Positions 1-16,702 are shown, counted from the first letter of the whole stretch. The stretch is 63,739 bases of DNA, filler included, from Guillardia theta CCMP2712 (GCF_000315625.1; 6 parts of 6 records of this genome joined end to end with filler, not necessarily neighbours in it); one strand, 5' to 3'. Notes: generated by a model not told the origin, from the sequence alone. Made by a program: numbers and translations.

Positions 1-84
1 CCCTCGTCCCTCGTCCTCGCCCTCCTCCTCCTCTCCTCTCCTCTCCTCTCCTCTCCTCTCCTCTCCTCTCCTCTCCTCTCTCAC

Positions 85-1843
85 CTCCTTCCAGACAGCT
101 TCTGCACGATCATCCCACTTATCTTTGAGGATCTTGAATGCATTATCAGTACCTTGACAATCCTCCAACCATCCTCCTCCACCTCCTCCCTTCATCAACC
201 TCCTCCTCCACCTCCTCCCTTCATCAACCTCCTCCTCGACCTCCTCCCTTCATCAACCTCCTCCTCCACCTCCTCACAACTCCACTCTCTCCCCTGACTC
301 TTCCATCTTTCCCCTCCCTCCTCCCTCCTCCTCGTCTCTCCTTCCCTCTTCTCTCCCGTCCTCTACCTCTTCCAGCGTCAGCAGGAGCGCAGTCCCAAAC
401 GGCGCCAGGTACTCTGGGCGGACGCCATAGCGAATATGACGGATCGTCAACTCGAAGAGCTGCTCGAAGAAGGTCTGCAACATCAACAACGTCAACTCGG
501 TCTGAGTCAGAAACTCTCCTCACCTCCGGCTCCGCCAGACTCAACAGGAGCATCTCCATGATATGCTGCAGCAGCTTCCCCCACCTGGCAGGCAGCAGTC
601 AAGTCAGCCCTTGCAGCTTGCGAGCTTTCATGTTGCAGTTCGCACATGGTGAACGAGCGGCGGAAGAGATGGGTCTGTTCGGGCGACTGGTACCATCCAG
701 TGTCAGTTGGGGGATGGAGGCAGAAGAGCGCAAGCAGCAGCAGCAGCAGCAGGGACAAAGTGCGGGGAGGATGGAGAAAGGCGAGGAGGAGAGTGGGGGT
801 AGGAGAACAGGGAGTGAAAGGACAGTGGCAGGACAGCGGCCGAAGACGAGGAGAAGGGAGCGAAGGAACTGCTGCCCTACCTCATCGTTGAGATGCTTCC
901 AAAAGATAGAGCCCAAGTCCTTGCAAACAAGATGAGGAGAAGACAGAAAGAGCAAGCGCGAGGTACCTCAATATCAGTGTTCACCCTGACTTCCTGCCAG
1001 TGCTCTAGGATCAGTTCTCCCCTGCTAGTCTTCAGTCCGTTCAGCTCGTTGGTGAGACTCTGCGGGGAGGGGAAAAGAAGTCAAACTCTGAGTGACTGGC
1101 ACGTCAAGTCAGTTCTCAGGTCTCCCATCACCTCGACGAGGGTCTGCCATAGCCAGCGAATCGAGTCGCTCATGTGCTCCCCCCAGCTTTCAACGGGCAG
1201 CGTCAGGTTTGACAAGCGGCGGCCAAACAGCACTCACTTCTCTTCCCCCACAGTGTTCTTCAGTGCAACCTCGAACGAGTAGCCCAGTCCCTTCAGGTTC
1301 TCGCTCCTGATTCCCCTGAGGACGTGGACAAGTCAAACTCAACGACGGTAACAGCAAGTCCGGGTCTCCTCTCACCTCTTGTAGAAGCGAGGCGCGTAGA
1401 TGTACACCTTCTCCACCTGCTTCTCCGGCTCCCAGACCAGCTCACACGCCTCGGCGACAAAGTCGTACACGTCTCGTATCAGCAACTACCCAGAGAGAAT
1501 GTCAGTGATAGAGCCATCATGGCGATTGTTCACCTCGACTTCTTCTGACCCCGGCTCCTTGGATTGCATGCTGATCTTTGAGTTGGTCCGCTTCTGCCTC
1601 ATGGTGTGCGCTGATGAACAGTGAGCAAGTGAAGACAACAACGCATGTCTCAACCTTGACTGATCGTATGACCTGGCGCACTGCTGCTGTGCGAGAAACT
1701 ATCATCATCATGCTTGAAGTTGCCCCCCTTGAATGCGCTCATCCTGATGAGATGAGACACCTGGACAGGAGAAAAGCGTCAATGATACAACAATCAGCAG
1801 TAGGGAGAGCAGGAAGATGAGGAGCAGGAGCAGGAGAAGGAAA

Positions 1844-1907
<64 letters not shown>

Positions 1908-4370
1908 AGAGAAGGAGGATGAGGATGAGGAGGGGAAGGAGGAGGAGGAGGAGGATGAGCAGGAAGAGGAGCAACACAAACAACGCCAAGGCTATATGAC
2001 ACTGCAGGACGCGCAAGGCAAAGACGTCACCCCATTCTGGCTGACAGCAGACGTCGAGGGAGAGATCCCCGAAGCTTGGTCGGAGCCGATGCTGTTTACA
2101 ACCTTGGAGATAGTCCTGGAGAAGCTGGAGGCCGATTCCGACCTCAGCTCCTCGTGCATGTTCTCAAAGATGGAAGGGCAGGTGATCGCTAGCTCTGCCT
2201 GGAAGTTCTTCGAGAAGACTTCTATGTCGACATGCTCCCTTAGGTACAGCACTATGTGCTCCAACGACGTCCCGTAGTCCTCGCCGTTCTGAATTGCCTC
2301 CGCCATGTTCTCGCAGACCATTTTGATCACGATTCCCCATGACTTCTCGACCTCCGGCGTCCACATCGCCCCCGCCGCCTCGGAGAGGACGTTCATGAAG
2401 ACTGGACCGATCAGCGGGATGTGGTGAGGGCGGACGTTGTAGAGCACATGGCGAACTCCGAGCCAGGTGACCTGCTGCTTCATACTCTCAGGATCATCGG
2501 CGAACGACACTAGAGTCCCCAGAGTGTTTCCCATCTTGATCGCCATGACCTCTCTGGGCTTCGTGAACAAGCTTGCAACGTTGGGGGCGAGCTTGAAGAG
2601 TTGGTCGTAGATGAGTTCACCGAGGTCAGCCGGCGTGTACTGCTCGAGGATACTTTCCCAGCAGTCCCTCACCACACTGAGAGTGGATCCGACCTCCTTC
2701 AAGGACTGGTCCAGAGCCTTGGTCAGGAAGGCCCACATCCAGAGCCAGGCCTTCTTCTCCTCCTCCAGCATGTCATCGCCCAGAGTGCTGTCAAACACTC
2801 GCATCACGATCTCCTGCATCAAGGGCATCTGCGATCCCCTCACTCCCTTGCGGTGGTGCAACGGTGCAAGGTCGGCAATCTTGACGTAGATCTCTGCCGG
2901 CGAGTGGATGTTGTCAACGATGCTTGAAAGCATGTCGACGAACTTGGTCCCTTGCACGACCCTGTTTGTGAACCGAAACAACGGCTCTAACTCGTCAACG
3001 TCCCGTACAGACTCGTAGATGGAGAGGCCTAGATCAGCATAGGACACCTTCCGCAGCAGCTTCCTCCAAGAAGATACGATAAAGTTCGAATGGAACTTCC
3101 ATTCCTGCAAGTCCACCTTAGGGGCCTTGTTCTTCTTCACATGAACATGCTTCCGTCGCACGCGACTTGCTCGGAACACTCCTCCAGCCTGACGCAAGTT
3201 CGTCCCCTGCAGCGTCGACTTGGATCCAAAGTGGCTGCTCTGTCCTTGGAAGGACGTGGAAGCGTTCCGGGATGACACGGTCACGTCATCCCTCGACCTC
3301 ATCGATCTTGGAGACTCAACAGCATCTGCAGGCTGCGCTCCTGCGTAGTTCAAGAAAGAGGAAGAATTCAAAATCTTTCCCTTGGAAGAGCTAAAGGATC
3401 CAGACTTCCTCTGGAAAGAGTTGAGCGAATCGTTCGACCCTTGACTGACAAGCTTCGGCACAGGAGCACTTTCTGCCTCCGTGTTCATCATCGTCAAGGC
3501 AAGGAAAGGGCAGTTCCCCGCGTTCCCTTGCGCACCAGAGACCTTGGCTTGACCACTGAAGGGACATTGCTTGTGCTCCAAACTCTTTCTAGGAAAGAGG
3601 TCTTGAGCGATATTGCCGTTGGATCGAACCTCGCAGGTTCCCTGTTGTTCTGGGACAGCCTCGAGCTTCTGGCCATTTGAATGCTCAGATCCAGCTGCCT
3701 CCTCCTCGGCACAATCGTCCTGGCTCGGGTAAAAGGCGTCGAGTTTCGAGGAGTTCTGCATCGGAGTGACACTAACGGTCTCGTCCTCCTCGGGGATTTC
3801 TTGCAGGACGCCCCTCTGCGCAAAGGACAAGTCAAGGTGTGGCCGAGCAACCATGTCGGAGCTCTCCTCATCACCAACTGTCATGGTCGCACGAATGTCT
3901 GCGAGGTCAATGGTGTTAAACATCGCAGATTTCTCGATCCCTTTCTCCTTCTCCCTCTGGTTGGCACTTCCGAATGTCAGGTGCGATGCCACAGTCACTT
4001 GTGCAGTATCCGAAGTTTGCACAGCATGAGCCAACCTTCCATTGCTAGCAGCAATCGCCTTCCCGTCATCAGGCTCCACATAGTCTCCAATGTACATACC
4101 AGGAAGCAATGAGTGCGCGGCATGGGTGTGGATTCTCATGAATTTGTCAGTCGCGTCCTTTCCAGAGTTGCTCTTCATGATGTGCTCTCCTCCTGGATGA
4201 TGTGTGATGTAATTGGTCACATCAAAGACCATGTTCTGAACAATGATGAGGATCTTTCCGGTGTCTTGAAGCTTGACAACATCGGTGCGGGACAGTTCGG
4301 GTTGTTTCAATTTCTTTCTCCGTTCTTCAATGGCCTTGAGGGCAGCCGCATCAAGCTCTTTGCCCTTCAT
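85..4370 (-). CDS. Multi-heme protein: N-terminal cytochrome b5 domain + two CPF motifs + at least four tandem 3/3 globin domains; spliced, 3' end runs off window
   Basis: First exon (ORF 4370-1992) has the b5 signature VFDVTNYITHHPGGEHIMKSNSGKDATDKFMRIHTHAA with both axial His, then globin 1 (IVSSW..IYES..VVQGTKF..LAPLHHRKGV..AWLWMW) and globin 2 (VRDCW..LIYDQLFKLAP..LF..LGVRHVLYNV..WTPEVEKSW). Downstream GT-AG exons splice to ..YAPRFYKRGIRSENLKGLGYSFEVALKNTVG..WLWQTL (globin 3) and LILEHWQEV..DLGSIFWKHL..HLFRRSFTMWGKLL..LTIRHIRYGVRPEYLAPFGTALLLTLEE|ILKDKWDDRAEAVWKE (globin 4; exons 474-367 and 132-85). A donor at 84 shows the gene continues. Confidence 0.9.
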
Positions 4371-4979
4371 TTCTTCTGTTTGTCTTCACTCTAACTGTCT
4401 TCAGATCGACTGCATATGAAGACGTATTGCAAAATATCGTTCCTGTTTTGCAAGGTCAACAGAATGCAACAAGCATCAAAACGAAGGGGCAAATAAAAAG
4501 AATGCAATTCAGGATATCTTTCATACTGAGTACTCTTGAACGTTTCATGAGGCTGTTATGGACAGAATGCATGCACATGCAGCTCAGTTCACAATAAATT
4601 GTCTACAGGTCTCTCGGGCACATATCAGACATTTTCAGGGATCAGGGATCAAGAACGCAGCGAGACATTTTGAGCTAGACAAGTATCCCTGATCGCACGC
4701 AAACATGCAGAACAGTGAAGGATAAATGTATTTGTGCCATTGTGGAGGAGGGTCTAGAGAGCATGCCCTCATAGACGGTTCACAGGAATGCAGGGAAACA
4801 CATTCGTTCTCCAAACTCACAGGGGCAGTGCCTGGACCCATCACATTCTGCATGTCAGACTACTGGGAGGGGACCATTCAGGGATCTTTCATAAATTTGG
4901 GGAAGGGCGAGGGGATAGATGGAAGCAGGAGTCAGGACAGCATCATTCCACCCATGCGTCTCCTCTCCTGTCCTCTCTT

Positions 4980-8700: not shown

Positions 8701-11700
8701 TCCTCCTCTTGCCCTTTCCACCCCTCCTCGCCCCCCCCCTTCATCCTCCTCTCCCTCGTAACCTTTCGTTTCTTTCCTCTCTCCCCTCCCCTCCTCTCTT
8801 CCTCCCTCCTCCACACTCTCCCCTTACTTCTCGAGCAGGGACTGCATGGCCAAGTACGCGAGGGTCAGGACTGACGACTTCTGGCGCAAGCTTCTCGTCC
8901 ACCTCTCTCTTGCAGCGCAGGAGCCGACATGCTCGAGCCTGGAGGCCGCAGACCTCATTCTTCCTCCCTCTGAGCAGCAGCAGCAGGAGCGCGCGAGGGA
9001 GAGGGAGGAAGAGCGGAGGAAGGACAAGAAGAAGGAGAGGCCGAGCCCGGAGGTCGCCCTTGTAGCTCTGCCGCTGCTGGGGGAGGAGGACAGGGCCGAG
9101 AACTTGATGAACGGGAGGAGGAGGAGCCACAGGTTTTCTGGTACTCCAGCAGTCGAGCTGATAGTCCAGCTGCTGCAGTCAGCCAGCGTAGAGCAAAAGC
9201 TGTTTGACAGGAGGGCAGAGGGACTAGTCAAACAGTTCCTTCGCTTCCTCTGCTTCCAGTATGACCCGCTCTTTGCGGAGGACCAGGAGGCCCTGGAAGA
9301 GGAAGACAAGAAGAAGCTGCTGGAGACGGGGAAGGCGGAGGGGCGAGCGGGCAAGGGCATGCAGAAGACGAAGAAGAAGGCTAAGGGGATGAAGCAGCAA
9401 GAGAAGGAGCAGGAGCAGGAGACAAAGGAGGAGGAGGAGGAGGAAGGGGCAGGTACCCTCCTACGGTACGGGAGGATGGATGCAAATCGTATCTTAGTGG
9501 CGTACTTGGAGATTCTCTCTTCCCAGCAGGGGGCCACCAGGTTCGAGCTGGGAAAGACCCTCCACCGCATCTTCTACAACCTCCTGCCGAAGGCGCATAA
9601 CCGAATCCAGCAGCTCGCACTAGCTGGGCTGCTGCTGGGGGGGTCCGGTAGTCTGGTGCCTTACAGGGCTCAGCTGGAAAATTTGATCGACGACGAGAAA
9701 TATCGTGATGAGCTCGTGTCGTTCCAGGTCTCCTCTNNNNNNNNNNNNNNNNNNNNNNNNNNNNNNNNNNNNNNNNNNNNNNNNNNNNNNNNNNNNNNNN
9801 NNNNNNNNNNNNNNNNNNNNNNNNNNNNNNNNNNNNNNNNNNNNNNNNNNNNNNNNNNNNNNNNNNNNNNNNNNNNNNNNNNNNNNNNNNNNNNNNNNNN
9901 NNNNNNNNNNNNNNNNNNNNNNNNNNNNNNNNNNNNNNNNNNNNNNNNNNNNNNNNNNNNNNNNNNNNNNNNNNNNNNNNNNNNNNNNNNNNNNNNNNNN
10001 NNNNNNNNNNNNNNNNNNNNNNNNNNNNNNNNNNNNNNNNNNNNNNNNNNNNNNNNNNNNNNNNNNNNNNNNNNNNNNNNNNNNNNNNNNCCTTCCAAGG
10101 ATCGTCCGCATGCCCAAGGAGAATACTCAGTCCCTGTTGGCTTACTGGAGGGATTCCATGAGATGTCCTGCGACAAGGAGGTCAAATTCTCCCCCTCTCT
10201 CCTCTCCTCTCCTCCCCTCTCCTCTCCTCCCCTCTCCTCTCCTCTCCTCTCCTCTCCTCTCCTCTCCTCTCCTCCCCTCTCCTCCCCTCCCCTGGTTACT
10301 TCGTCATTCTTGACATATGAGATTGACGTTTTCACTTGCAGTTAGCAAAGTTTCTCTTTACCATGCCGGAAATTCTTCAGTCGGTTAGTCGCTGCCTCGT
10401 CCTCCTTCTTCATCTTTCTTGTCCTTCTCCTTCTCTACCTCTTCATCTCCTTCACTTCTTCCTTGTCCATCTCATTCCTTGCCTTCTCCTGTACCTCTTC
10501 AACTCCTTCCCCTCCTCTACCTTATCTTTCTCTTCTCCCCCATCACCTCCTCCTACAACTTTCGCCTCCTGTTCTCCTCGTACTCACATTCTGCTCAGAT
10601 CTTCGCTTGCCTCTCTGCTACCAACGCTTCCTCCTCAGTCCGCAAGGTAGTTCTCGCCATCCCTCAGTCCCTCTTCGAGCTCGGCATGCATGAGCCGATG
10701 AAGCCGCACATGGAGCAGGTGAGCACGCAGCACCCCTCCCTATCCCCTCGGAATGACCCCATCCCCTCAGCTGATCGACCATATCCACCTGCATCTGGAC
10801 TCCTTCATCAACAAGGGGGGTCTCAGGTCAGCAGGGGATCAGCTGGAGCAGTTCAAACTCATCGGGCTCCTCCGTCAGCAATTCTCCCTCCTCTGGCAGC
10901 TCTCCGAGCTTGTCTCCAGCTCAGTGCAAGCCAAGAAGCTGCTGGACGTCCTCGTCTACTTCCTGTCAGCTGGAAAGAAGTTCGGAGGCGTCGGGTCAAG
11001 GTGAGGCACAGCAACGAGACTCGCTCCCCCCCCTCCCCTCTCCTCCTCCCGCTTGTCCTCCTTGACCTCTTGTCCTCCTCCTCCTCCTCCTCCTCCTCCT
11101 CCTCCTCCTCGCTCTGCTCCTCCTCCTTCCCATCTCACTTCCTGCCAGCGAGGAGAGCCGAAGGCTCGTCCTCTTAACCTCCGCCAACCTCCTCAAGAAG
11201 GTCGACGACTCCTCCCCCTACGCGGCTCCTGCTGCCCTGCAGCTGCTGCCCAGGGGTCAGCCCGAGACTCGCCGAGCAGTGTGCGAGCTGATCGAGGGGG
11301 TTGGGCGGCCGCTGGAGGAGACGAGGGGGCTGGTGAGGGACATGAACGCCTGGAGCACGACTAGGCTGGAGGAGATCGACTTCGACCTGCGACTGCAGGC
11401 GTACACGCGCGCGAGCAAGCAGGTACAAGAGGAGGACGAGGAGGAGGAGGAGGACGAGGACGAGGACGAGGACGAGGACAAGGACAAGGACGAGGACGAG
11501 GACGAGGATAAGGACGTGCAGGAGGAGGAGGATGAAGAGGAGGAGAACGTGCAGGGGATCTTACTAGTATGCGCAGGAGTTTCTCCTTCAGCTGGACGCG
11601 AACAACCTGCGGGTGCTGGCTGCCCAAAGTCTCCACGACATGCAGGAGACAGACATTGCGATCAGAAATCACGCGATGGCGCTGCTGGAGCAGCTGTTCC

Positions 11701-14700
11701 TTGCTGTCAAGAGAAGGACGAGCGAGCTAGCTGCAGCAGCGTTGGAGGAGGACGAAGTGTGGAAGGTCTACATAGAGCTGGTTGCTACATCCCTCAGGAG
11801 AAGCCTGATGGATAAGAAGAGGGAGATCAGACAAGATGCGTTCAAACTCAGTAAGCCCTGATACTTTCTCTCCCCTCCCCTCCCCTCCCCTCCCCTCCTC
11901 TCCTCTCCCCTCCCCTTCCTTCCCCTCCCTCCTCTCCTCTCCTCCTCTCCTCCCCTCCTCTCCTCTCCTCTCCTCTCCTCCCCTCCCCTCCCCTCCCCTC
12001 CCCTCCTCCTCTCCTCTCCTTTGACTCTTCTACCCAGTCATGTCAGCAGCCTCCGTCTTCGACGAGTTCCACCGCGACCTCCTCCTCCTCACCCACGTCG
12101 ACGTGGAGCAAGATGTCAGCAAGAACTTGCTGCACATTCAGTTCCATCGCAGGATCAAGGCCATGCAACGGCTCAAGACGATCATAGCAGGAGGAGGGAT
12201 ACAACATTCCTCTCTCCGCCACATCCTCTGGCCTCTGATCTGGTACGCGATCATCGACCCGCAGGAGAAGGAGAGGATGAAAGCTACGGAGGGAGCATAC
12301 AACCTCTCGGAGGAAGCGGTGAGGACAGCAGGAGCTCTGTGCTCGCAGCTGCAATGGAGGGAGTACCGCGTGCTGCTGTGGTCGGCAATGCGGGAGCTAA
12401 CGATGGGCAGGGAGTACGAGAAGGAAATCATCAAGCTTGTTTGCTGCATCCTCGAACATTTCCACTTCGAAATCTCCTCCTCCTCCTCCTCCTCCTCGTC
12501 CATGGTTGTTGATGGAGCGGAGGGGTCGAAGGGGGAGGTGGCGAATGAAGAGACGAAGGAGGAGGACAAGGAAGGGAAGGAAGCGGAGGAGGAGGAGGAG
12601 GAGGAGGAGAAGCAAGTTCTAGTGCCTACCGGAGAGCAGGAGGACATTCAGGGTCACGTCGTGGAGAAAATCCTTCCATTCCTCCTCAAACACATGACGG
12701 AGAAGGTCTCGACGCTGGGGAGGGAAGAGAAGAGGGTTCAGCAGGGGAGACTGAGGGGTCAGATAGCGCTTGCAGTGGTCAGGACGCTGAAGCTCCTTCC
12801 TGAACAAATGCTTCGCTCCCGTCTCCTCCTCGTCGTCGGCGTCGTGTGCAACGCCCTCCGGTCGAGGGAGCAGGGGGACAGAGACAATGCAAGGAAGACG
12901 CTGGCAGAAATAGTCCGGTGCCTGGGCCCCTTCTACCTCAACTTCGTCCTCACAGAGGTCAAGCATGCTCTTCCTCTGGGTTACCAGCGGCATGTTTGCG
13001 GCTACACCATCTACTCTCTTCTTGAGTCCCTTGAGAGCATCTTAGCTGGGGAGCACCTGGTCCCCAGCATGCCTCTGATCCTCGAGGTGTACACGAGGGA
13101 GCTTGTGGGAGAGCTGGCAGAGGAGAAGGAAGTGGACAAGATCGCGCAGAAGCTGCGAGAGGCGAAGAGCACGAGAGCTTTCGATGCCGTCGAGCTGATC
13201 GGGCGATGCCTGAGCTTCGAGCTGGTGGAGACAACCGTCCTCCTGCCCGAGCACGAGTACGCACTGAGGAAGACGATCCTGGACGCGGGAAGCCTCAAAG
13301 TCAGGAGGAAGATGGAGGAGTTGTTGAGGAGACTGGGGATGGGACTGGCGGCCAACCCGTCGGTCAGCGACGCCAAGATGCTGATATGGGTGCACCAGTA
13401 CGTCGATCGGTACCTGCCGTCCTGTCTGCCTCCTGCCAAGGGAGCAGGGAAGGAGAAGAAGGAGGGCAAGAAAGGGAAGGAGGAGGTGGGAACGGGAGGA
13501 GGAGCTGTTGGGGAGGCAGGGCAGAAGAGGTCGAAGCTGCTGGAGAAACGGCCAGAACCTGCTGAGAAACTTCCCCCGCTCGGCCCAGCGTGGGAGAGGA
13601 AGTGCAGGACGCGGGAGGGAGTGAGCATGATGGAGGGAGGAGGAGGAAGGGGAGCAAGAGCGGGAGCGGGAGCGGGAGGGGCAGACGCTGTGAACAGGAA
13701 CGAGTACCTCCTGGTGGAGCTAGCGCTGACCCTCCTGCATGTCCGGCTGAAGAGGGAGAGCGTGGACTTGAAGAGCAAGGAGACGCTGCAGATGCTGGAC
13801 CCCTTCGTTCCCATCCTCACCCGCCTCATGCTCAGCAAGCACGACAGCATCGTCGTGCTCTCCCTCCGCTGCTTCACCCTCGTCCTCCCCGCCGGCCTCC
13901 CCGCAGTCCAGGAGGAGCTGCCATGGGCTCTCAGGAACATCTTCTGGCTGATGGAGCGAGGAGGAGGCACAGGGTCGCTGACGATGCAAGCATGCTTCCG
14001 AGCCGTCACCGTCCTCCTGCGGGAGGCGAAGAAGAAGATCAGCATGAGCCAGCAGCAGCTCCGCGTCCTCCTCTCCTTCGCACGTCAGGACCTGCAGGAA
14101 GCAGAGAGGCAGGGGGTAGCGTTCGCCCTGCTCCGCGCTATCATCGAGAAGAAGCTAGTGTGCGAGGAGGTGTACGACATCATCTCGTCAGTGTCAGAGC
14201 AGCTCGTCACCTCCCAGTCAGATCAGACCCGCGCTCTGTGCTCGCAGACTCTCCTCCTGTTCCTCCTCGACTACCCGCTAGGTGCCAAGAGGCTTCACCA
14301 GCACATGTGCTTCCTCATCCGCAACCTGGAGTACGAGTACGAGACAGGGCGGCAGGCCGTCCTCCTCCTCCTCCACCACCTCGTCGAGCGCTTCCCGCAG
14401 GAGCTAGTGGATCAGTTCCTTGACCTCCTCCTCCTCCCGCTCGTCGCCAGGATCGTCAACGACGAGTCGAACAAGTGCAAGGAACAAGTCGCTTCCTTGC
14501 TCAAGGCTCTGATCTCGCGCGCCAACAAGAAGCAAATCGACCATATCCTCGACTTCCTCCTTACCTGGTCCAAGGGGGAGGAGACGCTCCTACGCAGAGC
14601 TGCCGCGCAGGTGCTGGGGATCCTGGTGGAGCAGCAGGGGGCAGCAGCGGAGCGATACGTCGACTTGCTCTTTCCCCTGCTGGAGGAGGCAGGGGAGGAG

Positions 14701-15781
14701 GGGAGGACGAGGAAAGGCGAGTGGGAGACAGTTTACTTTCTGCTGTCCTCAGCGGAGAAGTTGCAAGCAGGAGTACCTAGGATCCAGGAGAGGAAGGGGT
14801 ACAAAGCTTCCTTCTCCCTCCTCCTCCACGCCGACCTCCTCCGTCACCCCCACCCTTGGGTGCAGACGGCAGCTGCTCGGCTGCTGGGCAGGGTGCTGGG
14901 CACGATTGACCCCAAGGCGGAGGGGAGGAAAGAGCTTGTCTCCCTCCTCCAGAAGTGCGGGGGAGCGTTCGAGGTCGCGCGATCTTTGTGCTCGCAGGTA
15001 GCTGGGGAGATGTTCGAGGAGAAGCTGGCGGAGCAGATGCTGAAGAACCTGGTACACTTGACTGCCGCCATGCACGCGAACAAAGAGATGGTTGGGGAGG
15101 AGGTGGAGATGGAGGACGAAGCGGGCTCTGCGAGCGAGGAGGAAGAGGAGGAGGAGAAAGAGAGTGGGAAGGCTGGCAGGATGAACGGGGTCGATCATGA
15201 AGAGGAGGAGGGGAATGGCACGGTCCCTGTGCAGAAAAAGGCGGAGGAGCAGGAGGAGGAGGAGGAGGTCAAAGAGGAAGAAGCTCCAAGAGCTGTTCGC
15301 TGGATTTTCGTGAGACTTTCTAACATCGGCAGAAGATACAATGGACAGAGAAGAGACTTCGTTTTCAAGGTCCTCCTCCTCCACCGTCCTCCCCACTCCT
15401 TCCTCCTCCTCCTCTCCACCGTCCCCCCATCCGACCACCACCACCACCTCCTCCTCCTCCTCCTCCTCCTCGTTTCGCTCCTTCGTCCTCTAACCCTTCT
15501 ACAGTTCTTCGCTGCCATGGGCATCAGGTTGGGCAAGTCAAAACTTCTTCCCCTCCTCCCTCACGTCGTCGCTCCTCTCTACCGAGCGCTCGAGACGGAT
15601 ACTGAGAGCAGCAAGGAGGAAGGAAGGAAGGAGCTGGCGCAGGAGGTCTGCGAGCTGCTGCAGGGGGTGGTGGGGCACGAGAAGTTCTACTCGTCCTACA
15701 ACCAGTGCAGGAGCAGGCAGAAGCAGAAGAAAGACAAGAGGAGAGCAGAGCGAGCCATGGCAAAGCTGCTCGACCCTGCTG
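5751..15781 (+). CDS. UTP20: U3 snoRNP/SSU processome HEAT-repeat protein UTP20 (DRIM); multi-exon, 3' end lost in gap 15889-16535
   Basis: N-terminal KKKTTRENRHRYLGFNERLEAVQVDV..SHFEQQIGKWGELNLTDDF..LPLLLHNK..LARDLRHEMYPFF. Central NLLHIQFHRRIKAM, LRSREQGDRDNARKTL..LGPFYL..GYQRHV, and FLLDYPLGAKRLHQHMCFLIRNLEYEYETGRQAV all match the UTP20 pattern. About 10 kb, consistent with a protein of >2000 aa. Confidence 0.93.
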
Positions 15782-16702
15782 GTACAGCCCCTCTTCCTCC
15801 CCCTCCTCTTGCTTCTCCTACCCCAAACCATCCACTACCCACCAGTCCTCCTCTCGCTCTTGCTCTTGCTCTTGCTCCTGCTCTCGCTTNNNNNNNNNNN
15901 NNNNNNNNNNNNNNNNNNNNNNNNNNNNNNNNNNNNNNNNNNNNNNNNNNNNNNNNNNNNNNNNNNNNNNNNNNNNNNNNNNNNNNNNNNNNNNNNNNNN
16001 NNNNNNNNNNNNNNNNNNNNNNNNNNNNNNNNNNNNNNNNNNNNNNNNNNNNNNNNNNNNNNNNNNNNNNNNNNNNNNNNNNNNNNNNNNNNNNNNNNNN
16101 NNNNNNNNNNNNNNNNNNNNNNNNNNNNNNNNNNNNNNNNNNNNNNNNNNNNNNNNNNNNNNNNNNNNNNNNNNNNNNNNNNNNNNNNNNNNNNNNNNNN
16201 NNNNNNNNNNNNNNNNNNNNNNNNNNNNNNNNNNNNNNNNNNNNNNNNNNNNNNNNNNNNNNNNNNNNNNNNNNNNNNNNNNNNNNNNNNNNNNNNNNNN
16301 NNNNNNNNNNNNNNNNNNNNNNNNNNNNNNNNNNNNNNNNNNNNNNNNNNNNNNNNNNNNNNNNNNNNNNNNNNNNNNNNNNNNNNNNNNNNNNNNNNNN
16401 NNNNNNNNNNNNNNNNNNNNNNNNNNNNNNNNNNNNNNNNNNNNNNNNNNNNNNNNNNNNNNNNNNNNNNNNNNNNNNNNNNNNNNNNNNNNNNNNNNNN
16501 NNNNNNNNNNNNNNNNNNNNNNNNNNNNNNNNNNNTGAGAAAGGGAAGAGGGCAAAGGCGAGACAAGAGTGAGGAGGAAATGAAGAGAGAGAGAGGAGGA
16601 GTGGGAAAGAAGAGGGAAGGAGGACGGGCAGAAGGTGGGAAAGGGGATAGCGAGGAAGGCGAGGAGAAAGAGGGTGGAGGAGGCACGCAGGTAGGGGAGG
16701 GA

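Follow-up and report, generated by a model that had tools for sequence, protein, structure and literature searches.

A candidate globin-coupled TRPV-like channel encoded by a cytochrome b5–globin gene of Guillardia theta

Does the chain of heme-protein domains encoded at the GUITHDRAFT_120658 locus of the cryptophyte Guillardia theta CCMP2712 form a free-standing, self-reducing enzyme, or does it sense a signal on behalf of something further along the polypeptide? The locus lies on the minus strand of a 63,739-nt stretch of DNA (hereafter the window; six parts of the genome joined with filler) and derives from scaffold C189 (G000:C189:61979-80243). There, a cytochrome b5 domain and a series of globins are encoded by a gene that runs off the window's left edge, and an earlier note, made from the sequence alone, had proposed either an intramolecular electron-relay NO dioxygenase or an O2/redox sensor. 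Here we find that the globins lead into a linker domain and a TRPV-like channel. Our preferred reading, to which we give a probability of roughly 0.6, is that window positions 4444-85 (-) are the 5′ two-thirds of a gene for a membrane protein of about 1,500 residues, comprising b5, a disordered Cys-Pro linker, four 3/3 globin folds, the linker domain and the channel, and that this protein is a heme-based sensor (of O2, NO, CO or redox state) gating a cation channel, with b5 as its built-in electron partner. The analysis establishes the order of the domains, the splicing, the invariance of the proximal histidine of the fourth globin and, by structure modelling, the TRPV-like fold of the linker and channel domains.

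One spliced gene that continues beyond the window

The large open reading frame (ORF) of the first exon, 792 codons at window positions 4370-1992, is 100% identical to GUITHDRAFT_120658 (EKX33177.1; public model P0001, 1,060 residues), and its stop codon sits within an intron. Logan contigs from three RNA-type runs, laid on window positions 1-4700, resolve 11 introns, every one of them GT..AG on the minus strand (Table 1); that the contigs come from RNA follows from the splicing itself, because GT..AG joints can arise only from RNA. A single contig, X1 (4,362 nt, depth 256), covers positions 4444-2028 without a gap and spans all 11 joints, placing the exons below 1992 on the same transcript as exon 1, as the earlier note had supposed; its count of about nine short exons between 1500 and 85 turns out to be exactly nine.

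Joined together, the 12 exons give 3,156 nt, or 1,052 codons without a stop, in a frame that is open at the window edge. Exon 12 terminates at a splice donor and carries no stop codon, and X1 continues for about 1,170 nt past position 132, so that the mRNA reaches about 1.1 kb beyond the window's left edge and the gene does continue off the window, as anticipated. The public model is mis-annotated at its 3′ end, where intron 11 (133-366) is read through to a false stop; its C-terminus is false because the model translates the repeat in that intron. This repeat comprises a 29-bp tandem array of 3.8 copies at 166-275, and positions 172-373 match dozens of other contigs at 70-84% identity (59 matches), indicating a dispersed element within intron 11.

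Three canonical globins and a pseudo-globin behind an intact b5

The N-terminal b5 domain is intact, as had been noted, with a Pfam score of 63.1 bits and both axial histidines in place (the HPGG motif, here H-H-P-G-G, and F-M-R-I-H), which are also kept in the G. theta paralog P0163 and the Hanusia phi transcript P0164 described below. Behind it, Pfam Globin (PF00042) matches two stretches of the first exon (E = 2.2e-17, 64 bits); P0001, which includes the fourth globin (G4), reaches 86.3 bits, and the full-length paralog P0163 has three separate Pfam Globin stretches. The closest Protein Data Bank chains to the first globin (G1) are HGbRL (3wfw) and HGbI (3ubc) by phmmer, and the second (G2) matches HGbI 3s1i with E = 2.6e-12; both are most similar to the Methylacidiphilum globins HGbI and HGbRL and to neuroglobin. 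In an AlphaFold2 (AF2) model of P0163 (predicted local distance difference test score, pLDDT, 87.7), G1 and G2 superpose on HGbI, myoglobin, cytoglobin and neuroglobin with Z of 18-19 (G1 on HGbI 3s1i, Z 19.1 with a root-mean-square deviation of 1.5 Å; G2 on neuroglobin 7ohd, Z 18.7). PF00042 is the sole Pfam globin family found, and the closest chains are HGbI, HGbRL, neuroglobin and cytoglobin, not S-type (protoglobin-like) sensor globins.

The third globin (G3) extends over residues ~698-922, with a long insert after helix C. Its profile aligns with that of G2 (hhalign 96.8%, E = 2.6e-10), setting a Phe against the F8 His of G2, and the P0163 model gives it a confident helix pattern, with pLDDT below 50 only in the insert; the structural matches listed for the four-globin model of P0163 are to G1 and G2 only, and the G3 fold is assigned from the hhalign result and the helix pattern. 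Across the family, the proximal position of G3 is occupied by a residue other than His in 82 of 86 members (mostly Leu, Ile, Phe or Met) and by His in four. By contrast, the proximal F8 His is present in every G1 (11/11), G2-type (70/70) and G4 (86/86) domain. G1, G2 and G4 are, as judged from sequence, canonical 3/3 globins that should bind heme, and G3 is a degenerate but conserved pseudo-globin, predicted to be free of heme. The B10 and E7 residues given in Table 1 are assigned by alignment to HGbI and by helix spacing, not from a structure. The count of at least four 3/3 globins in the earlier note, two in the large ORF and two that appear only after splicing, is thus right as to folds and locations, but comes to three canonical globins and one pseudo-globin. 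No further globin was found beyond G4 in the 10-kb loci of all eight paralogs with tblastn and custom hidden Markov models (HMMs); a linker domain and a channel follow instead. In the P0163 model, long continuous helices connect neighbouring globins to one another and G4 to the linker domain.

Between b5 and G1, all cryptophyte-type members that reach that far carry C-P-F-(L/M/S/K)-A-L once or twice, and CPF triplets number 21 against 4 expected from composition. Each sets a Cys-Pro dipeptide and a hydrophobic residue in a flexible region, which is the sequence-level signature of a heme-regulatory motif, and we take these motifs to be candidates for such a role. Two other motifs stand out in this otherwise divergent linker: E-S-P-R-S-x-R-S-R-(D/E) at window ~3150-3300 (residues ~355-400) and, just before G1, G-T-N-(L/I)-x-x-A-G-G-V-(F/Y)-(R/H).

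Paralogs and full-length transcripts end in a membrane domain

A six-frame Pfam search of the 87.1-Mb assembly (669 contigs) gave 16 globin hits, all in eight loci (three on C78, two on C178 and one each on C192, C189 and C29), although intron-split globins elsewhere would be missed by such a search. At each of the eight, b5 lies within the same long open frame as the globins. The seven gap-free loci encode b5-G1-G2-G3-G4, a linker domain of ~170 residues (LNK) and a membrane domain of ~375 residues (CH), collinear on one strand over ~7 kb.

The eighth locus is that of GUITHDRAFT_120658. Immediately before window position 1, an assembly gap of 1005 N (L025 8975-9979) hides the LNK exons, and same-strand channel exons, mostly 70-96% identical to P0164, resume at L025 8867-6480, the first of them at 8867-8703; another gap, of 817 N, lies further on. 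The missing LNK exons were not found on other contigs, LNK matches in the assembly being confined to the seven other paralog loci, and a search for homologous proteins returned only the truncated model P0001 for this gene. Could the gap hide a gene boundary, the globins and the channel exons belonging to two genes? The 1005 N do separate the exon for the G4 H helix from the first of the channel exons, yet exon 12 ends in a splice donor and not a stop, the RNA contig runs on by ~1.1 kb, the spacing fits the linker exons of the paralogs and the seven other copies are uninterrupted; of the alternatives weighed here, we regard this one as the least credible.

Transcripts point the same way as the intact paralogs. 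P0163 encodes b5, four globins, LNK and CH in one ORF of 1,582 residues on a contig of 4,886 nt, which leaves no room for introns and so represents a single reading frame. P0164, a Hanusia phi transcript from MMETSP, has the same domains in a complete ORF of 1,470 residues, and P0009, from an environmental contig, has globins, LNK and CH in one ORF of 1,425 residues on 4,838 nt. In P0163, P0164, P0009 and most of 150 family representatives, the H helix of G4 passes directly into linker and channel, giving a contiguous globin-output arrangement. One further Hanusia phi sequence, P0003, jumps from the F helix of G3 into the E helix of G4 (A-P-R-L-Y-R / W-W-G-H-L), skipping ~100 residues of P0164; either an error of assembly or an isoform that drops an exon, and so contains a hybrid globin, would account for this.

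The linker and membrane domains resemble TRPV subunits

The tail of P0009 matches TRPV3 across S5, the pore, S6 and the post-S6 region (phmmer, E = 3.4e-4), and its S6 motif L-N-I-L-I-A resembles the L-N-M-L-I-A of TRPVs. In Pfam, P0167 scores above the cut-offs for Ion_trans (33.5 bits) and PKD_channel (31.9 bits), P0163 and P0164 fall below them, and YVC1_C (PF23317) appears on P0163, P0164 and P0167 as a precomputed hit only. An AF2 model of LNK and CH from P0164, built on a 95-sequence alignment, is confident (pLDDT 89.3, predicted template modelling score 0.85). About two pairs of ankyrin-like helices and a beta-hairpin linker accompany S1-S6, which include a pore helix; S6 is immediately followed by a further helix, and the C-terminus forms a beta-strand. 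The 50 best Foldseek matches to this model are all TRPV3, TRPV1, TRPV4 or TRPV6 subunits (E = 5e-12 to 1e-9, 514-618 columns, TM ~0.5). The modelled LNK and CH thus show a TRPV-like six-helix channel fold. C-terminal to the channel lies a nearly invariant G-G-(I/V)-Q … S-P-x-(D)-P-W-P motif.

These results bear on whether the gene encodes an NO dioxygenase or similar enzyme, in the form of a self-reducing b5-(globin)n protein that is soluble and has no membrane output. The pocket of G1 is flavohemoglobin-like (Tyr B10/Gln E7), b5 is a known globin reductant and the annotated P0001 ends after G4. The stop of P0001, however, lies inside an intron that is removed in RNA, the transcript extends ~1.1 kb further, a channel forms the C-terminal end of all seven intact paralogs and of the full-length transcripts, and Pfam finds no FAD/NAD(P)H reductase domain in P0001, P0163, P0164, P0166 or P0167, so that the flavohemoglobin arrangement is not seen. 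We therefore consider a soluble enzyme very improbable. Of the outcomes that the earlier note had envisaged, the free-standing self-reducing NO dioxygenase is not supported, and the O2/redox sensor is the best-fitting; of the two kinds of C-terminal domain it had looked to, an FAD/NAD reductase is absent and a signalling domain does follow, in the form of the TRPV-like channel.

A family of globin-LNK-channel proteins

LNK is found in at least 292 representative proteins (50%-identity clusters, E <= 1e-3). Among the best 150 of the 292, nearly all full-length proteins have the form (globin)1-4-LNK-CH. Named sources are the cryptophytes Guillardia, Hanusia and Chroomonas, the dinoflagellate Polykrikos and the chromerids Chromera and Vitrella, and many more members come from environmental contigs; the sequences are already public, under uninformative names. 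The common core consists of a G2-type globin, the pseudo-globin, a G4-type globin, LNK and CH, to which G1 is added in cryptophyte-type members. Two complete globin-LNK-channel units occur in one polypeptide in P0015, P0016/P0159, P0037 and P0093 (Polykrikos, Chromera and Logan contigs), an arrangement reminiscent of two-repeat channels.

The position of b5 varies. By Pfam it is N-terminal in cryptophyte-type members and some others, and C-terminal, after the channel, in a further set that includes P0074, P0088, P0097 and P0125 (E = 1e-12 to 1e-14). This looks like independent fusion of the same partners, and the placing of b5 at opposite ends in different lineages speaks for a partnership between b5 and the globins. 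The electron relay from b5 to the globins that the earlier note had pictured is to this extent plausible as a functional link, but not in the setting of a soluble enzyme.

How heme could gate the channel

Because a TRP subunit has its two termini in the cytosol, all heme domains of the protein would lie on that side of the membrane. Channel gating would be altered when the hemes of the globins bind O2, NO or CO, or when they change redox state. G4 would be the likeliest sensor, because its F8 His is invariant and its H helix is directly continuous with the coupling domain of the channel. From there, the signal would pass along the rigid helical connectors to the linker and the TRP helix and change the entry of cations, probably Ca2+; the unbroken helices between domains in the AF2 model would fit such rigid transmission to the coupling domain that controls the gate in TRPVs. 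The b5 domain would supply or withdraw electrons, either keeping the globin hemes ferrous or reporting the cellular redox state, and the Cys-Pro-Phe motifs could add transient heme binding. As for the ligand, the predicted Tyr/Gln pocket of G1 would suit O2 binding or NO dioxygenation, and the apolar Trp/Trp pocket of G4 would suit NO, CO or redox sensing.

Two other readings accept the channel and assign the globins a different part. In one, what the hemes sense is not gas but labile heme or, by way of b5 and b5 reductase, the redox poise of the cell, the Cys-Pro motifs and globins acting as heme-occupancy or redox switches. In its favour are the conservation of the Cys-Pro-Phe motifs in the linker, the fusion of b5 to one terminus or the other, and the apolar distal pocket predicted for G4 (Trp/Trp; family consensus Phe/Leu), in which stable binding of O2 would be disfavoured; globin folds that are stable and have an invariant proximal His, however, usually keep their heme permanently, and the Cys-Pro motifs are confined to cryptophyte-type members. 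We hold this reading to be unlikely, though a serious competitor. In the other, the globin folds are a structural or assembly scaffold that replaces the ankyrin-repeat domain of TRPVs, with no sensory role. Non-heme globins are known, G3 is conserved family-wide despite loss of its heme ligand, and the connectors between domains are rigid and helical. Against a mere scaffold stand the invariance of F8 His in G4 (86/86) and G2-type globins (70/70) and the recurrent fusion of b5, which is hard to explain without a redox-active heme, and we judge it improbable.

Several points weigh against our preferred reading of a heme sensor gating a channel. First, N gaps at the GUITHDRAFT_120658 locus hide the linker exons and the last of the channel exons, and the link to the channel there is indirect, drawn from how far the RNA contig extends, from the seven intact paralogs and from orthologous transcripts. 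Second, one of those transcripts, P0164, may have been assembled as a chimera from two paralogs: its N-terminus is the same as that of P0003, its N-terminal half resembles paralog C78a, and its channel half resembles GUITHDRAFT_120658. Third, the sole raw-read RNA run, X15, yielded 3 reads only (~6% of the run was sampled) and was uninformative for splicing. Fourth, no clear W-K-F-x-R, the canonical TRP box, was seen in the channel. Fifth, a Tyr B10/Gln E7 pocket such as that of G1 is typical of NO-dioxygenating globins, so that enzymatic chemistry remains compatible with the data. Sixth, the globins here are F/M-type, unlike the S-type globins usual in globin-coupled sensors. Finally, we infer heme binding, ligand, ion selectivity and gating from sequence and predicted structure throughout.

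Relation to earlier work and known systems

The nearest architectures are each matched in part. Like the globin-coupled sensors (HemAT, globin-diguanylate cyclases and the Leishmania globin-adenylate cyclase), the protein has N-terminal heme globins, a helical linker and a C-terminal output; in those sensors, the output is presumed to respond to ligand binding or to a redox change at the heme. Unlike them, its output is an ion channel rather than an MCP, GGDEF, kinase or cyclase domain, and it has several tandem globins, one of them a pseudo-globin, and a fused b5. Its predicted fold matches whole subunits of TRPV1, TRPV3, TRPV4 and TRPV6, from the ankyrin-like helices to the C-terminal beta-strand, but at 13-18% identity, with a short ankyrin-like region in place of a six-repeat domain, no evident canonical TRP box, heme domains at the N-terminus and hosts that are cryptophytes and alveolates, not animals. 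As in flavohemoglobin and in cytoglobin reduced by cytochrome b5, a 3/3 globin with a Tyr B10/Gln E7 pocket (G1) lies beside a dedicated electron donor; unlike in flavohemoglobin, that donor is b5 and not an FAD/NAD module, there is no reductase domain, and the protein is predicted to be anchored in the membrane through the channel.

The chimera itself has been reported before. EKX33177.1 (1,060 residues) and EKX39126.1 were described as an N-terminal b5 followed by three 3/3 globin domains, with mostly Met at E7, Phe at CD1, atypical intron positions and a third domain, D3, that 'lacks the H helix' (Smith, Vinogradov & Hoogewijs 2014, Biol Direct 9:7; PMC4101818). The words 'channel' and 'transmembrane' do not occur in that text, and the degenerate G3 and the eight-gene family are likewise absent from it (PMC4101818). 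The H helix seemed to be lacking because a truncated gene model was used; it is encoded by the exon at 132-85. The same paper lists five small 'single-domain' globins (107-126 residues), grouped with D2 (PMC4101818). Because all 16 Pfam globin hits fall in the eight loci, these five are probably fragments of the genes described here. The openly searchable full-text literature (subscription-only articles excluded) yielded, beyond the 2014 note, nothing relevant on a fusion of globins to a TRP, cation or ion channel in cryptophytes, dinoflagellates, Chromera or protists, and neither the candidate papers nor a 2020 globin review mentions a globin-channel fusion. The earlier note's impression of an architecture not known as characterised is half right: b5 with three globins of this very protein had been in print since 2014, uncharacterised, in a paper that missed the channel and the fourth, degenerate domain (PMC4101818). 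In the literature searched, neither the fusion to a channel nor the pseudo-globin was met with, and the same holds for the family of eight genes and for its wide spread beyond cryptophytes; these we regard as new.

Features of the locus

Coordinates are collected in Table 1. The divergent neighbour at window 5751-~17000 (+) is a homolog of UTP20 (small-subunit processome component 20), with Pfam UTP20_N at 8846-9736 and UTP20 (E = 4e-55) and UTP20_C within 12040-15888; it is broken by N runs at 9737-10090 and 15890-16535. Two microsatellites, (AGGAGC)n at 1820-1973 and (CCTCT)n at 9-80, occupy introns 1 and 12 and give rise to long spurious Leu/Pro/Ser/Arg ORFs in the ORF list.

Table 1. Exons, introns and protein features of the GUITHDRAFT_120658 gene within the window
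Feature	Window positions	Strand	Details and evidence
Exon 1	2028..4444	-	~74 nt 5′ untranslated region, start codon 4370-4368, 781 codons (b5, low-complexity linker, G1, G2, first half of G3); X1 and ORF, 100% identical to P0001
Cytochrome b5 heme-binding domain	4080..4286	-	aa 29-97; Pfam PF00173, E 2.5e-17, 63.1 bits (cut-off 23.7), profile positions 3-73 of 74
Two Cys-Pro-Phe motifs, b5-G1 linker	3504..3566	-	aa 269-271 and 287-289, the second C-P-F-L-A-L; candidate heme-regulatory motifs
Globin 1	2697..3116	-	aa 419-558; Tyr B10, Gln E7, proximal His in A-P-L-H-H; Pfam Globin
Globin 2	2283..2687	-	aa 562-696; Tyr B10, Met E7, proximal His in G-V-R-H-V; Pfam best stretch aa 587-687
Globin 3, N-terminal half (helices A-C)	2145..2279	-	followed by ~100-aa disordered insert across end of exon 1 and exons 2-3; family alignment
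Exon 2	1655..1757	-	G3 insert, conserved V-S-H-L motif; RNA joints 1757/2028, 1610/1655
Exon 3	1534..1610	-	G3 insert; RNA joints
Globin 3, C-terminal half (helices E-H)	1132..1485	-	exons 4-6; Phe for proximal His (A-P-R-F-Y-K-R-G)
Exons 4-6	1485-1375, 1314-1238, 1186-1132	-	G3 C-terminal half; RNA joints
Globin 4	85..1059	-	aa ~925-1052; six exons; Trp B10, Trp at E7 position, proximal His in T-I-R-H-I-R-Y-G-V; exon 12 is the H helix
Exons 7-12	1059-966, 918-881, 686-643, 581-524, 474-367, 132-85	-	Globin 4; RNA joints, open frame
Introns 1-11	1758-2027, 1611-1654, 1486-1533, 1315-1374, 1187-1237, 1060-1131, 919-965, 687-880, 582-642, 475-523, 133-366	-	RNA contig joints
Start of intron 12	1..84	-	donor GTGAGA, then (CCTCT)n repeat, into the 1005-N assembly gap hiding the linker-domain exons; sequence

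Implications

Animal ion channels sense O2 and NO indirectly, by way of prolyl hydroxylation, cysteine oxidation, soluble guanylate cyclase or heme that is loosely bound, and to our knowledge bacterial heme-globin sensors drive enzymes or chemotaxis receptors, never a pore. If our preferred reading holds, b5 and globins hard-wired to a TRPV-like channel would let a single polypeptide convert gas or redox chemistry into membrane current, and how a heme conformational change can open a channel would become directly testable. More tentatively, and in our estimate with somewhat less than even chances, the family would supply the first known case of covalently fused globins that gate an ion channel directly, in response to a diatomic gas or to the redox state of heme. 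Such 'globin-coupled TRP channels' of cryptophytes, a dinoflagellate and chromerids would translate O2 or NO levels into Ca2+ signals in these flagellate algae, for example for aerotaxis or to control vertical migration, and b5 would serve as their on-board reductant. G. theta is also the source of the anion channelrhodopsins, and the present family would offer a candidate genetically encoded gas-gated channel as a tool. It would also extend TRPV-like architecture well beyond animals and alter the picture of algal globins, as all Pfam-detectable globin domains of G. theta appear confined to these eight genes.

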